Part shown: positions 3,201 through 18,200 of the stretch, piece by piece
How the letters are laid out: every line of letters starts with the position of its first letter
Numbering within the stretch: the first letter of the stretch is position 1
Assembly: GCA_965637545.1 (NCBI GenBank)
Contig: OZ281495.1
Span: 19,716,001-19,780,000, forward strand
Length of the DNA stretch: 64,000 nucleotides
Direction: 5' to 3'
Source: Phallusia mammillata
Lineage: Eukaryota
Translations under genes and position numbers: made by a program
Notes under the pieces: model-generated
What the model saw: the letters and a program-made list of their open reading frames with translations, nothing else
Told to the model about the DNA's origin: nothing
Database searches by the model: none

Positions 3201-6200
3201 TAATTCGCTTGTTTAAAAACGAGTTCGTGCGAGGACAAAAGTAAAAAACATTAATAGCTGTACCTGTGGTAGCCATTTTCTTCAAGGAATTTAATGTTGT
3301 TTGCTATGGTGGAACTTTCTGCATTCATATTTAAGCAAACATTACGATGTATCCAGATCTTGGCATCCACCGACCAACCACCTTCCCCATTTTTTGCACG
3401 ATGTAAGGTGCGTTTCATGCAAATTACTCCTCGCCCTACTCAACCAGATGTCGTCACTTACGAAGGACAGTCTGGCGGCGTCCCCAGCGCACATGACGTC
3501 ATCTCCTGCCACGTCATCATCGCAACAGTTCAGTGCTTTCGTGTTGTCGATTCTTTCGAAACATCACGTGCAGGAAACTGCACTACTTGCATTGTCCCAC
3601 ACCGTACAGGCTTTGCACGTAAGTAAATTTAACTGCAATTAAGTTCTACCCACAGAAACACAGTAAACTGCGGAGTTAGTTACAATTCAGCGCATTCCAC
3701 AAACTTTGCCGTTTTACTTGTTTTCTACATTTTAACTATACGATCCACCGTTAAATAAAATTTTGTTTATTTTTGGCCATCTTTGTGTGCGGTTATACAG
3801 ATTAATATCACCAACCTTTAAAGGTTTTTGATATACTAATTGTGGCATTTTTTTAATGACACTTTTTTTGCGGTATACCATATTTAAATTGGCATTTTGC
3901 AAATAACCACCATTTAATTAAACTCACAGTTTACACTTTTTAACATACGAAACAGATTTTAATGTCGTTCTGGTTGTACAAAACCTTTTCCTCGTTGCTA
4001 ATTTATTTTGCTTCAGGCACAAGAAACGAACGTTGAAAGTCCGATTGACTTCTTGGGCATAAGTGGGTAAGCATTAACCTTTTGTTATTAGCCGTGAATT
4101 CCGTGAATTTGTTTTAAGGTCAATCATGTCGTACGACTCGATCGACATTTCAATCAAAGACACTTGCAGGGTTCTTTGCACCAAGATAAATTAAATTGTT
4201 CTTTTTCTGTGATGATCTTGAAGCTCGTAACTTAATCTTAAATCTGTGTTTATGTGAGTCATTTTACCCTTGGGCTTTTGTAATTTTATCTGTTTGGGTT
4301 TGTGTGCAGATCAATGCGTGTAGTGATATAATACACATCGGGTTCTGTAGGCGGCGTACGCAAATATAAATCTGTATTGAAGATAAACATCACAGACTAT
4401 TTTGCGCACATTTTTTAACATTGCTGATTTACCCTAATCACATTCCCAAACTGACAAACAATATGGCCCTTCAAAACTGAAAACTTAAAAAAACAAAACT
4501 TTTTCTAATTTCGACATAACTTACTGTTATAGGTATTACGCTTTCAAGTTAGATGTTTTCGTATTTCTTTACCTTGATAAATTTATGGATTAATGATCGA
4601 AATCCACCATATTTTAGCTGGACGAAAATTAAATGCGTACGAACACACTTTTTATGTATAAACGTACGAAATTTATCATAAAATAACTGAGCTAAAACCT
4701 TGTGGAAAAAAATGATCTGGCGTCAAATAATATTTTATTGCTTTATCAATGAAGGCGCTCTATACCAAGTCTCAGCGACACAGAGTTAGGTTATTGGTGG
4801 TGTGGAAACAATCGTTCATTCATCGTCAGTTTCCAAGCGAACTTGCTTCACCTTGTGCGTTCCATTATCGCCTTCGAACATCGATGTACCGAGATCGATC
4901 CAACACGCTTTCGAGGTAAGCTTTCTGGCGTGCGGCAACTTTTTAACCGAGGTACACTGCTGTTGCTGTCGGATTTTGGTTATTGGCTTTGAAAAAATAG
5001 TCGGGAGGACGAAAAATCGTTGGTAAAAAAATTAATTAATTTCATTTTTTTACATTCGAGGTAGTTTTTGTGGCCATGTGATGGTTACAATTATCTACCA
5101 TACATGAAATGTGCAACATCAAAACCGGGTTTTATAAATAAAACCTAGTAGATTTTTTTCCAGTGTAAAAAGTAGGAACTGTGTAAACAGTCTTGCAGCA
5201 TTTGGTTTTGTAAAAGGTTACATGGGTTTAATTCTATCCTGTTACATAAAACACTTCCTAACCGGCCGCCGGGCATAAACGTTCAGGCAGTTTTTGTGTG
5301 TTTGCATAGATTCCTACCATCTCAAGGCATGGGATTTTACTATCTTACGGATATTATATTTAAATATTTACATCTATACAATAACAGGAGTTCTTCCCTG
5401 TCAGTGGCGCCTTGTTTTAATACGTCGCATCGTTTTAAGCCATCAAAGACTTGAAAGTGTTACACGCTACGAAATCTAGATACGATAATGCGTTGTGCCA
5501 CAAAGACATCCACCAATCTGGAAAGATAATCTTGCAAATCATGACAGCAATTTTCTCCGTGCTGCTGTAATTTTACACCAAAACCGGGGCGTTATGTTTA
5601 TCTTATTTTTCCCGGGCATACTCATTTTGATTTCCATATAAGGCCCCCTTATTTTAAATGTCAAATAGGCAAAACAAGTGTTTCTGATCTTAACCAAGTA
5701 TGGCACAATAATGATGGATATTGAAGGCTTTTGACACGATGAAGTGGTTGACAGCTCGACAAAGTTTACTTGGCTTCTACTTGGTTTTAGACTGTATTAA
5801 AAACCCTAAAAGCCATTTAAACCAGCTGTTTTTACCGTCGTGGTTATCGACAACGAACCATATAATTTAACTTTTTACAAAAAGATAAAGTCGCTTGTAA
5901 GTGCAGTTATGCAGGGAGAACTTCCTTTGTACCCCTAGAGATTGTATCTTACAGCCTCAAATGTAAACTTTTCTCAGCATTTAAGATTCCTGCACTTGGG
6001 TGTCCAGTTCCTAACAATCGCGCTTCTGTGTATTCTCACCTTGTAATGGTAATGGAGACGCAAATGAGAACCGGGTGTAACGGACTTAAGTCTGAAACCA
6101 CATGACATAGCACACCCGAATCGACTTATTTCATGGTTACATGTCTTTGTATTTTAAATTTTGGGAATAAATGCTATGAGTCTTTATTTAGATTTTGATG

Positions 6201-9200: not shown

Positions 9201-12200
9201 TGCAGCAACAAATAATGAAAAAGACACGAAGTCGATTGAGTGTTTTCGATCACCACAAAACCGATTAGTTCTTATATCCGCATGTTTTGCTGCGGAAGAA
9301 AATTTTTGCAAGACGATTGCGAAAATTATAACCTCCTGGCACAAAAATCGCCTCAGCCTGCAGGCAAGTTATTAATTTTCATGTTCTGTTTTGTTTTTGC
9401 GAAGATGGCACCACAAACACGGTCGATAAAAGGCCCTTGTTATCTTGCGCTTTTGTTTGTTTTGGGCAATTTTAACAATGCCGTTTTCAAAAAAAAATAT
9501 CGTGTGAATAGAGTTATCTTCATTTGCATTCAAATGTAATTAAAGCGGTATTTCACCACGTTTTCTTTGTTCTACAGCTCGTTTGCTTTCCAACTTTATT
9601 TCATCTTTGTCGCGTTAAAAAAAATCCAAATTTGATGATTGCAAAAAACGAGAAAAATGCACTTCAAGCTTCACGTATGTAAATAAATTATGCGACAAAA
9701 AGTAATTCATCATGATCTTGCAGAAGAAATTTTCGCTTCCACAGTGAACACAAACTATTTCTGTTTCTCTCTTCCGGCGCCTTTGCCTCCATAGTTTTAA
9801 ATCTTTGCAACGTAGCGAGTTCTGATTGGACAATTTACAGAAGCTGGACTCCCCTTGAGCACACGTACTTGAAGCAGTAGCTGCAAAGATACTGGAACAT
9901 CTGGTTCAACCTTGGGATATAACGGTTGCCGTGTTTCACTCCTAAAAATGAAATGAATTATTAAATAAAATGCTCAAACCAAAAGATCTATGTGTACAAC
10001 AAATACCGAAACCAAGATTTATTTGTGATAAATCAAAACTAAAGAAATCTTCAAATGTGCTTACTTAGTGTTCTGCATCCAGCTTCGCGGTCCACCAAGT
10101 GACACATGTTTTGGGTTTGACAGAGACGTTTAACTCTCTGTCTCTTCTGGTGAGCTGTTGACGATTTTCGGATCGCACTTTCCAAAACCGATTTATTTTC
10201 TTCTTTTCCTTCTTTCTTCTCTTCCTGATGTTCGTTGCCGAAAGATCGAAGAATGTCATCAAACTGTAATTGTGAAACAGAAAGTTACGAATTTGTGACT
10301 CACCATGTGCAAAGTCTGACTAATATAAAAAAAACTTACAATTCTTTCATTGTTGGAGCAATCTGGCATCATTCCCTTCCATTTTCCCAGTTCACAAGTC
10401 ATAGAGGTGCTTCTGTGTGGCCCAGATGGGTCCAGAGGACACGAATAGGTAAAGGTGCAAGAGACGCCGTTGGCCACCGCGTCAATGACGTTACCCTTGT
10501 CACCGGTCACCATGTCTGCATCACAAGTCATGTTCGATGCGAAACTCCATTGGTGCGTTGGTTCGGTGATCTCGGCCAGTTTGCATGTCTGCGGCTGTTG
10601 ACCTGTCAATAAAAAATAAGTCCGGTTAGTTATGACCAAACACCTGCCATTCGATGCCATTGTTTACGATATCTGCACGTGTGGTCGCCAAGATCCGTAA
10701 TCGCGCATTGTAGGCTACTATTGTATGGTATGCTTCGGTACTGATACCAAAACGATGTCAATTATTGCGCGTAACTGTAAGAACTTGGAGCCAGATCAAA
10801 TGTCATCTCGCCTACGATGCACTTTGAATCGTCGGAACGTTGTGAGCTAATAAGGCTCAATTGAAACGCGCACCATGTGTCACCATCAGCGCGTGCCATT
10901 CAGCTCAAAGACAAACAAACATCAAAAAACAAAGACCCGTTCGCGGATAAGAACACTTCTATTTACAAACGTTCCGTTCGACCAACCGATTTGCAAATAT
11001 CTTGCGCTATTAGCGATATTGACGCTTGCAACACGGCAGATAAAATATCGCATGTGTTTATCACCTGGAGTCATCCGTACACGGGTTTTTCCAAGTATAA
11101 GGCAGTCGGTGAAGCTAATCATCGCACACAACACGAGGAACACAACTTTGCAAAGTTCCATTTTAATTTTTTCAGTTATCTATAGTCTTTCTAAAGTTAT
11201 AATTTGTACCTGGGAAACAAAGGCAAAAGTAAATAAACCTTCTTTTAACTTAAAACTCCCGCCATTTTGCTCTTTCCAGCTTTTCAAACAATCTTATTTT
11301 CAGCTTAATCATTTGTTGACCCTTGCGCTTATGTGAATTGCCAGTGGGGCAAGGCGAGGTTAATATACCAGCGGCCTTTTTTCATGCGCTTTGCGTTTTC
11401 AGGGCGACGTGGAAATCGGCTCGACTCGCGGTTTCTCATCGACCTCGCAAACTCTGTACTTTCCCGCGTTGCTCTCTTGTCTTACTCATACTTAATTAAG
11501 CATCCATAATTTACACGTTGCCTCATTTCCATCGGGCACTTCAAAGTCACGAATATGCATCACAGGCTCAACTGTATACATGGTAATGAGAAATTCGAAG
11601 TTTGGCCTTGTACGTATTTTGTCGCAGGAAACAATTTGCATTGAATAGAAAGACACAGGAATGCTACTAAGATGTTATTCTAACGCTATTACGTAAGGTT
11701 GAAAGTTTCGCTGGTTCGCTTTGTTTACTGGTAAGCGGATTGCACAGAACGCAGCAGTTTTCGATTTCTTGCTGAGTTTGTAAATGATCTGCGCCAAGTT
11801 TGTAATCGCATCGACATTTACACACCTGTGACGAAAGCGAGATTGAAAAGTATTATTATTATTCAAAGTGCCGCCGGAACTTGGAATGTTAGAACCACTT
11901 TGTTCCAGAACTTTCTACATTCGTTGCATTCGCATTAATTATATCGTTGTTCCATCGAGACAGTTTATTATTTTGAAGTGCCCTTTGTGTGTCCGAAAGG
12001 TGATTTTTTGCTTTTGAATCGTTTGATGTTTCGTATTTAATAATAACTAAACGCAAGTTTGCCTACATGGGCTTCCGTTTATTTCTGTGAAAGTTTGAAT
12101 CATCACGAAGACCAACGCTTGGGTAACATTATCAACCAACATCAAATTTCCTGGTTTCGCAACGTTTTAGTTTTGTTTCTTAATATTATGTTTTTTATTG

Positions 12201-15200: not shown

Positions 15201-18200
15201 GGAAACATGTCATTTCTCGAACAGCTACAAAAATAAATCCCGATCTAAATACAAGCGAGTGACTCTGCTGTGTTGCGATCTAAAAACGGGGACTTTACGA
15301 AGACCGAAAGTTCCTATTCATTGCTGCTGTTTCGTGAACTATACTCCGCTTCTGGTCTATGCAACATGCAACATTAAGTAACAATTTGTGAAAAAGTCCT
15401 CGTTTTAGTGTATTAAATCCAATTGCACCTTCCGGCCCAAACCGACTTAAACCCAACCTTGGGGTGAGGCGGACGGTTTGACTGCTGGATAATGTCTATT
15501 TAATATCCTGTCTCAGTGCAAGCTGACACAGACCTAACCCATGCTTATAATTTGTTTAGTTTGCATTAGACGCCGTAGGCTAGATTATTTTTCGGTGTTC
15601 GCTTACCAAGAACCTTGCAAAATGAAGCGTTTTTGATTTCAAATGCGTTTTTGTAAATGTCAACGAAAGGTGCAAGTAGTGATTTGCCGTCGTTTGAAAT
15701 GTGAAACTTTTCTGGTCTCGGCCATACTACGTGGCAAATGATACAGCATTTTAGGGTAAATGCATTTTCTACAAAGCCATTTTGGTTATTAAAAGATTTT
15801 TTATCACAGAAGCGCCGACGTCACCACAACCGGAAGAAAATCGACGAGGCTATCTTTCGAACCTTCCCTTATCAAAGCAACCTGCTCTGCTGAACTCCAT
15901 CATAAAAGTGCTGCGTTTGCAGGTACATGCACGCAATATAGTTTTAATTAGCCCCTTGAGTTATGCACAGACCTTTTGCAACCTTCAACGGATCTCCACA
16001 TCAGCTATATACAATGTCACAGTTCGATTTAACTATTAAACGTTCTAGCAGTCGACATCATGCAAAGTTTGACTGTTAAATACCAAGGCGCACTTAATTG
16101 AAACGCTTATTATCACCCGGCAGCTTGTGGGAATACGTACGAATATTATTCTCTCTTATTTGTATGGTTGCTCGCAATATACTATTTCACAGACAGTAAA
16201 TGTATGTTTAATTAAAAGTGTCGACATTTTTCAGTATTTTAAGTGTCTTTTTAAATTTTTGGCTTCCGTACCACCAGGGAAGGCTTCCGATAGCTCCCAC
16301 TTTGCACGATTTTACTTAAAAGGCTGTTTGAAGAATTTTTGCTTCAGGCAAAGCCAACCTTGGTACTAGTGTAATTTTGTTTGTTTTCCCTTTCCATTCC
16401 GACATGCGTTTTAGACCGGAAAATTAGGCATGTCACTTGCTATGAACAACTAATTTTTCATATTTCGACTCTCAAGTTTAACCTCAACTAATAAAATCCG
16501 GTGCACCTCGCTCGCCCTTTTCGTCGCCAGTCCATCTCCGCAAAGATCTGATCAACTATGATTTTTGTTTAGCTACGCGCTGATATATTCTCGAGAGTGC
16601 TGACTTCAAGATTTTGCAACACGGTTTAATTCCAGCTGACTAAATGATGCTATTGCGAAATTACTGTGTATTTTTGCCAAACCGCAATTTTCTTTTGAAT
16701 GCTTCCGCCTTGAACACATGTAACTTGTAGCACAGGTTTGTATTTAGCTTCTGCGACGGACAAATTTCTCGGTGGTAATTTTGTCCGGAATTTTAAAGGT
16801 ACTTGAAGGCGACTTTTGGTTAGCAATGGCAATTCACAAGTGGGAACAAAAGCTATGCTAAGCACGGACGACCGCATGACCCGATTTTACTGTTTTGAAT
16901 CTTGTAATTTGCTCGCGACAACAACATTCAACACAATAATTAAAAACCTCAAATGCCTTAATTCCCCTCCTTCGAATTCCTTGCAGTCTGCTCGAGAACT
17001 TCATTCTGATTGGTTGGATTTTGTGACGTCGTCGCTGCCCCACATGTCACGTGCCCTGCCCACTATGCTGACTCCGCTTACGTTACAAATTTGCCGAAAT
17101 TTGGAGAACGCCGCCAACTGTTATGTAACAAGCAACACTAAAGTTCCATCTGGAGAGGTAACGTAAAAATGTTTTTTTACCTTTCGCATAGTGAAATTGC
17201 ATTGTCTAAAATATTTTTACTATTTACGCCACAATAAAATTTGTACCTCAAACGCACTAATGTAAATTTTTACCCCGGTTTAAACCAACTTATATCTGTG
17301 AAAATTGGGTGTCTGTTTGTAAAAATAATACTCGCTGTTTGGACTTTGAGCGTGCCCTTTTTGTACATACTTTATATTTAGAAAGTTAAACTCCAATGCC
17401 TGCAAACATGACGAACCATGATTTGCATTTTCAAAAGTACAATGTACATTATATCAGGACATAGCTTCATGCTTCTGGTTAGATGATGAAATGTTGCACG
17501 GCGGGACGTACGTTTCGTCAGAACATTTTCTTTCTAGAGCAGTGGTTCCCAACCTTTTCGTAGTCACGGACCCCTTTTATAAATTTTATAGGTCCGCGGA
17601 CCCCCAACGTAATTTAGTCTTGTTTTGTTTTTCGTTTCCTGCATTATACGGTATTACTTTTGCCTTTTTAATCAAAATTTAATGAACCTTCACAGTGCTT
17701 GAATCTCAATTAAGTTCTATACTAAAGCAGTCAACGCAACTAAGAGAAAATTTTTCTGGGGTACAAAACCTGTAACAAAGCACTATATGTTTGATTGTTC
17801 TTGTGTGTTGTGATGTCACAATTGAGGTAACAATCACAAAAATGTTAATTTTCCCGAATGTTTAATAAACAGTTTGCACTTGCAAGCAAGATTGTAAAAA
17901 CGGTTCGAAAGCTCACAAATTTTTTATTGTTGGTTAATGGTACTTAGAATGTTTGCCTCCACGGACCCCCTAAAACCATCTCACGGACCCCTTGGGGGTC
18001 CGCGAACCCCAGGTTGGGAACCACTGTTCTAGAGGATCTATGTCTGTTTTTAGTCCTGGAACTTGCACAGCGTAAAAGCGTGTTTGCCTACAACAAAACC
18101 TAGCAAACAATACTTTTTTAAGTTTGCTTATTTTCTCTACGTATGTACACTGAAAAAAGGTTGAAAATTCTATTTTAAAATACAACTATAAACAACTTTT

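Follow-up and report, generated by a model that had tools for sequence, protein, structure and literature searches.

A gene nested antisense within DOP1

The stretch analyzed here (the window) comprises 64,000 nucleotides (nt) of the genome of the ascidian Phallusia mammillata (GenBank assembly GCA_965637545.1, contig OZ281495.1, positions 19,716,001 to 19,780,000 of the forward strand), and all coordinates count from its first letter. Exons of the gene DOP1 lie on its plus strand, and within one intron of that gene the minus strand holds a small four-exon gene, the subject of this report, whose predicted product of 221 amino acids (aa) would begin with a signal-like stretch and carry two cysteine (Cys)-rich modules, the first like a sushi or complement control protein (CCP) module and the second a C-terminal module with six Cys (Cys1 to Cys6). 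The main features of the locus are the following.

4753..4915, plus strand: DOP1 exon before the hosting intron, with a GT donor; homologous to Ciona contig L011 15347-15496 (E value, 6e-11) and Clavelina contig L012 18315-18482 (E value, 5e-13)
15809..15937, plus strand: DOP1 exon past the hosting intron, with an AG acceptor; homologous to Clavelina contig L012 5297-5449
11065..11161, minus strand: exon 1 of the nested gene, with the ATG at 11161, a hydrophobic signal-like N terminus, and a phase-1 end before a GT donor
10603..11064, minus strand: intron 1, GT..AG
10340..10602, minus strand: exon 2, coding for the six-Cys sushi/CCP-like module in 87 full codons (10600-10340)
10065..10263, minus strand: exon 3, charged spacer with the motif [KR]KS[SA][ST], KRQRVKR (10146-10126), and Cys1 to Cys3; ends 3 residues and 1 nt past Cys3
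9835..9941, minus strand: exon 4, basic loop, Cys4 to Cys6 (C-x2-C-x4-C), hydrophobic end in ..LL, and stop codon (9837-9835)
9595..9600, minus strand: AATAAA, a candidate polyadenylation signal by sequence alone, 234 nt past the stop codon

Joined on the minus strand, segments 11161-11065, 10602-10340, 10263-10065, and 9941-9835 (97, 263, 199, and 107 nt) give 666 nt, or 221 codons plus a stop, with consistent phases, three introns that all run GT..AG, and an in-frame stop 21 nt upstream of the ATG. This rereading and joining reproduced to the base the four phase-consistent exons and the peptide strings of the original prediction, among them the six-Cys string of 21 residues in exon 2, KRQRVKR at residues 160 to 166 of the product (RVKR at 163 to 166), and the tail spacing C-x5-C-x8-C-x22-C-x2-C-x4-C. 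The signal peptide that it had proposed was recovered as a hydrophobic stretch in the first exon, from which we infer secretion of the 221-aa product.

The host gene was recognized by Pfam matches to TPR_DOP1 in plus-strand exons 2183-2302, 2654-2779, and 16981-17145 (51 to 53 bits for the last of these) and to DOP1_C at 27.7 to 28.9 kb of the window, with a Dopey_N match lying 7 to 9 kb before the window start. The borders of the hosting intron have the look of a splice donor (gt directly after 4915) and a splice acceptor (ag directly before 15809). Given these flanking DOP1 exons and intron borders, the minus-strand gene is nested antisense within DOP1, as had been claimed. The part of DOP1 that lies in the window, traced from 2183 to 28957 on the plus strand, takes up nearly half of it.

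Sequence runs provide a view of the transcript. In 16 small runs from four studies, 12 of which we guess to be RNA, 0.12 to 0.54 of the sampled words of positions 9700 to 11300 were present, and two large runs from one further study hold 1.00 of the words of this region. Words of intron 1 reached a share of up to 1.00 in DNA runs; among the small runs for which a value is listed, the share was 0.39 in run X1, 0.20 in run X4, and 0.00 in runs X8 and X12. Most of the small, probably RNA, runs with 0.22 to 0.38 of the words of positions 9700 to 11300 lacked intron 1. Such shares are what a spliced transcript would give, short of proof. The gene is single copy, and no paralogues were found in the source genome (a match, C8, at an E value of 0.5 was due to chance).

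The frame is intact over four exons, the word shares fit spliced RNA, and at least three named ascidian species keep the Cys patterns, the intron phases, and the position in the genome. An open reading frame due to chance, or a gene that has died within the intron, is therefore extremely improbable, even though word searches of protein collections, run with exon 2 and with a profile, did not turn up the species' own product and the predicted exon junctions rest on sequence. Because domain order, Cys spacing, and intron position and phase recur in six other sequences, the gene is more than chance, and we regard it as real.

Counterparts in other ascidians share the DOP1 intron

An exhaustive HMMER search with exon 2 recovered eight family-like proteins. 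Identities between exon 2 and its relatives ranged from 38 to 54%, with E values down to 9e-24 (P0003, 54% identity); the values were 9e-18 (46% identity) for P0004 from Ciona intestinalis and 5e-11 for P0006. Three other HMMER matches (P0008, P0011, and P0015) were rejected as unrelated repeat proteins upon a Pfam check. A word-indexed search with exon 2 returned no matches, and no members were added when the family alignment served as the profile for a further word search. Exon 3 entered the searches as 10066-10188 or 10066-10173.

The C. intestinalis counterpart is LOC100181117 (NP_001233155.1, FAA00715.1, UniProt F7BCQ0; 215 to 217 aa), whose product bears the database name "Hypothetical Ciona neural peptide"; since it was already in public databases under that name, the novelty implied by the original prediction did not hold. 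We suspect that the name originates from work by Hamada et al. in 2011 (Dev Biol 352:202), which, going by papers that cite it, reportedly dealt with 565 brain-enriched genes; its link to FAA00715 is our guess. A literature search found no paper naming this gene or its accessions and no tested function for the relatives. Other counterparts include H2Z8L1 in Ciona savignyi, LOC143445319 in Clavelina lepadiformis (244 to 257 aa), and several ENA/JGI contigs.

The exon structure recurs along with the protein sequence. In contigs L004, L005, and L006, two C-terminal exons were found downstream of the sushi exon, a penultimate exon with C-x5-C-x8-C, which ends 3 residues and 1 base past Cys3 at a GTAAGT donor, and a last exon with C-x2-C-x4-C and a hydrophobic end. 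The phase-1 donor 3 residues past Cys3 is present in these three contigs and in Clavelina. Ahead of the sushi exon, Ciona and Clavelina likewise have a short first exon with a phase-1 end, and each has two alternative first exons (L011 10001-10069 and 11896-11958; L012 10001-10051 and 12839-12928) that yield differing signal-like N termini (isoforms X1 and X2). Like the window protein, the Ciona and Clavelina counterparts (215 to 257 aa) combine a signal-like start, a six-Cys sushi-like module, a variable charged spacer, and a C-x5-C-x8-C...C-x2-C-x4-C tail ending in ..LL, with the same intron phases and the same antisense position in a DOP1 intron. Unlike it, they are without R-x-[KR]-R before Cys1, and the Clavelina protein has a 29-residue tail past Cys6.

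In the Ciona (L011) and Clavelina (L012) assemblies, the counterpart is antisense to a DOP1 gene of 2256 or 2280 aa. Local tblastn indicated that the DOP1 exons of the window are collinear with those of both assemblies (38 to 85% identity, which shows that the animal is no near relative of Ciona or Clavelina). The nested gene is flanked on one side by the homologue of window 4753-4920 and on the other by the homologues of 15797-15937 and 16981-17136. Judged by these exon homologies, the hosting intron is the same in Ciona, Clavelina, and the window, and antisense residence in it predates the divergence of the three. DOP1 exons were not found in the flanks of contigs L004 to L006. Since sushi similarity, Cys pattern, intron phases, and DOP1-intron position all agree, we take the window gene to be the orthologue of LOC100181117. 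Such antisense residence in one DOP1 intron in three ascidians amounts to a long-lived gene nesting, and because the gene is kept there, its position is an easy orthology marker. On the plus strand opposite the sushi exon, positions 10329 to 10445 match L011 (E value, 2e-5) and L012 (E value, 2e-4); a second gene at this place was considered and rejected, the match being a mirror of the conserved minus-strand coding sequence.

A sushi-like N-terminal module

The module encoded by exon 2 is very likely sushi-like, a conclusion that we draw from tests that are individually weak and convergent. Pfam returned no Sushi match for exon 2 of the window. In the language-model features of Atlas, the nearest clusters were Sushi_2 and Sushi (0.93; 181 to 187 shared features), and further HMMER matches, when checked with Pfam, included the multi-sushi proteins P0007, P0016, and P0017. 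When the family profile was compared with the PDB, 20 of the 22 chains matched belonged to CCP proteins (beta2-glycoprotein I, factor B, DAF, CSMD1, and C2; E values, 0.01 to 1), with the alignments running over ..Y.C...C..G.W..P.C. The four consensus CCP Cys and the tryptophan (Trp) between Cys III and Cys IV are present, and the columns ..Y.C..., ..C..GKW, and ..PDC align with those of beta2-glycoprotein I, factor B, and DAF.

The fold comparisons lean the same way, toward the CCP beta-sandwich, with low scores. The Ciona protein was modeled with AlphaFold2 on the basis of the family alignment, and by block the sushi region of the model scored 81 to 96 in the predicted local distance difference test (pLDDT). 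Foldseek with this model placed CCP proteins on top (E values of 0.3 or worse), and the rows returned by VIA-align include the short consensus repeat (SCR) of E-selectin, factor B, factor H, beta2-glycoprotein I, CD46, DAF, and sushi domain 1 of GABA-B R1a. The six-Cys CCP module of the original prediction is thus borne out, as a sushi-like module, by sub-threshold Pfam scores of the relatives, language-model neighbors, multi-sushi proteins among the HMMER matches, and fold matches. Three further results were set aside: a phmmer match in the PDB to designed "Cake" repeats, an artefact that summed eight nonsignificant repeats; a single-sequence fold of exon 2, whose pLDDT of 56 makes its Foldseek list meaningless; and an Atlas fold search with the whole Ciona model, in which the TM score stayed below 0.5.

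The family shares with the Sushi/CCP domain (PF00084) the consensus C...Y.C...C..G.W...P.C. It departs from that domain in the distance from Cys I to Cys II, which is about 48 residues and in CCP modules is typically about 30, and in a score below the Pfam gathering score; moreover, the module occurs singly, without a lectin, EGF, or membrane part. In exon 2, the extra Cys pair follows CCP Cys I and precedes Cys II, as it does in selectin SCRs. Selectin SCRs and domain V of beta2-glycoprotein I (PF09014, Sushi_2) are the six-Cys sushi domains to which we compare it.

A conserved six-cysteine C-terminal module

Seven sequences were compared for the C-terminal part, namely, those of the window, L004, L005, L006, C. 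intestinalis, C. savignyi, and Clavelina. Conservation of the Cys pattern in related species had been set beforehand as a test of the original prediction, and C-x5-C-x8-C-(x16-27)-C-x2-C-x4-C followed by a hydrophobic end was present in every one of the seven. The module was assigned to no known family by Pfam, by the PDB profile, or by an Atlas feature search with the Ciona C-terminal module, which gave no usable match; this agrees with the earlier remark that the Cys spacing was not recognized. The lone match of this part in the PDB profile comparison, the zinc ribbon of ribosomal protein bL32, was taken as chance, and weak Pfam matches of exon 4 to DUF7562, zf-MYST, and B-box were due to the CxxC spacing.

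In the Ciona model, the C-terminal module (residues 153 to 212) is helical, with helices at 153 to 163, 166 to 169, 173 to 177, 179 to 182, and 190 to 212; the last of these, a long helix, carries the three Cys of C-x2-C-x4-C. The spacer before it (133 to 151) has a pLDDT below 50. The model thus suggests a helical fold for this module. At residues 188 to 193 of the C. intestinalis protein (P0004), within the loop between Cys3 and Cys4, lies the string RTRRRR, which, if cut, would turn the C-terminal module into two disulfide-linked chains. This loop is basic in most relatives; the RTRRRR motif itself is not common to them.

The terminal ring CFKYVC had been noted for a loose resemblance to urotensin II. 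A peptide of the urotensin II or somatostatin type would have a ring of the form C-F-W-K-Y-C, with Trp-Lys, at its very C terminus and behind a basic site. Across the seven sequences the ring reads CFKYVC, CYKSYC, CFKTFC, CYDKHC, CYYKYC, CFKNYC, and CFTYVC, which conforms to the pattern C-[FY]-x-x-x-C with no Trp. The resemblance faded on closer comparison: Trp-Lys-Tyr is missing, the segment is modeled as a helix, a third Cys lies 2 residues upstream, and a tail of 7 to 29 residues follows. Convertase-processed precursors with a Cys-containing C-terminal product, such as those of urotensin II, do have a comparable layout, with a signal peptide, a long N-terminal part, a basic site, and a Cys-containing C-terminal piece, and the basic site of the window protein is a full furin consensus. 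The window family departs from them in that its relatives do not keep this site, a conserved folded domain makes up the N-terminal part, and C-[FY]-x-x-x-C is embedded in a six-Cys helical module with 7 to 29 residues after it.

A Cys-rich helical C terminus might instead disulfide-link chains into dimers or oligomers and so present several CCPs, by analogy with C4b-binding protein, in which CCP modules are followed by a helical C-terminal oligomerization tail with two Cys. The long modeled helix (190 to 212) would suit such a role, as its three Cys are spaced i, i+3, and i+8 and hence lie roughly on one helix face, and the C-terminal end is hydrophobic in all relatives. Six Cys, however, are an even number that can be satisfied within one chain, no Pfam match to an oligomerization domain was found, and the likeness to C4b-binding protein is one of layout alone (a CCP and then a short helical Cys-containing C-terminal piece), with no sequence match and with a single CCP and six tail Cys in the window protein. 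We therefore consider an assembly tail quite improbable.

A furin motif before Cys1 in the window protein

The original prediction placed a furin site at the center of its mechanism. In the window protein, RVKR is indeed a full R-x-K-R consensus one residue before Cys1. The residues leading up to Cys1 in the seven sequences are given below.

Window: KRQRVKR-L-C
L005: KSLRR-L-C
L004: ALDR-L-C
L006: KRQAKLKID-L-C
Ciona intestinalis: NKVRNY-C
Ciona savignyi: AKLGRY-C
Clavelina: SLGNR-C

Directly before Cys1, R-x-[KR]-R thus occurs in one of the seven, the window, and because the motif is confined to that sequence, the conservation in related species that had been set as a test of the original prediction was not found for it, and the site does not appear to be key to the mechanism. 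In this species itself, to go by the motif, cleavage at RVKR during secretion is quite conceivable and would separate the two modules. The spacer is otherwise unconserved and probably disordered, apart from the motif [KR]KS[SA][ST], which, where present, lies 12 to 19 residues before Cys1 and could be a processing or modification site.

A probable secreted two-module protein

We favor, with some confidence, the reading that the gene encodes a secreted two-module protein, in which the sushi-like and the helical six-Cys modules are conserved and furin cleavage is lineage specific at most. In this scheme, the 221-aa product would be exported by means of its signal-like N terminus and would fold into two disulfide-rich modules, the disulfide pairing being presumed, with I-III and II-IV as the pairs expected of a CCP. 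To the four canonical CCP Cys and the Trp, the N-terminal module would add one further Cys pair, placed after CCP Cys I and before Cys II. The C-terminal module would have its six Cys within about 55 residues and be helical as modeled. The spacer that would join the two is charged, probably disordered, and poorly conserved. With both modules as its conserved working parts, the product may be an extracellular binding or signaling protein and, should the Ciona name be a fair hint, a neural one. RVKR before Cys1 would have been added in this lineage, the family as such not depending on cleavage there.

Several observations weigh against this reading. The sushi assignment is below threshold in Pfam, where the relatives score 13.3 to 20.3 bits for Sushi (PF00084) and the gathering cutoff is 20.7, and VIA-align with residues 25 to 107 of the Ciona model, although its best rows are mostly CCP modules, gave Z scores of only 4 to 4.9. 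The C-terminal module has a moderate pLDDT (61 to 82 by block), read within the whole-protein Ciona model. One or more dibasic pairs lie 3 to 32 residues before Cys1 in all seven sequences, and [KR]KS[SA][ST] is found in five of seven (window, about 10173-10159 on the minus strand; P0004; P0018; P0006; and L005), and for these two reasons convertase processing could still take place somewhere in the spacer. Finally, the words "neural peptide" in the Ciona name show that earlier annotators had a peptide precursor in mind.

The dibasic pairs, [KR]KS[SA][ST], and the Ciona name speak for a prohormone- or defense-peptide-like precursor, as originally proposed, in which the sushi module would be a folded proregion and a cut by a furin-type convertase at RVKR would free an active 55-aa six-Cys peptide. 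The full R-x-K-R one residue before Cys1 and the modeled disorder of the preceding spacer in the Ciona protein would also suit this scheme. Yet the furin motif before Cys1 is missing from six of the seven sequences, and the dibasic pairs stand at differing distances in a spacer so rich in lysine and arginine that they are expected by chance (by our estimate, about 1.2 pairs per 30 residues at 20% Lys plus Arg). The sushi module, moreover, is conserved at least as well as the tail, which would be unusual for a mere proregion. Taken together, a precursor of this kind seems rather unlikely. In a more speculative version, which we think unlikely, the C-terminal helical module would represent a new class of tunicate signaling peptide, freed at basic sites of the spacer and acting in the nervous system; that the cuts would fall at [KR]KS[SA][ST], at other dibasic pairs, and here at RVKR, with the sushi module serving as chaperone or coligand, is a proposal that we hold just as doubtful.

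The two-module reading thus keeps one part of the original interpretation (the nested gene, the signal-like start, the sushi-like module, and the unmatched Cys pattern) and gives up another (the furin mechanism, the likeness to urotensin, and the novelty). The gene is an unannotated new member of a small family of secreted proteins, apparently confined to tunicates, which databases list under a speculative name. The conserved, modeled-helical six-Cys module of this family is without a match to Pfam families or to the solved structures compared. For tunicate hormone searches, this module and [KR]KS[SA][ST] merit attention, the furin site being peculiar to this species.

A repeat beyond DOP1

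At positions 28954 to 29335 on the minus strand, just beyond the last DOP1_C match, two adjoining open reading frames give almost identical strings of 60 to 70 residues, which resemble a tandem repeat or the remnant of a mobile element.

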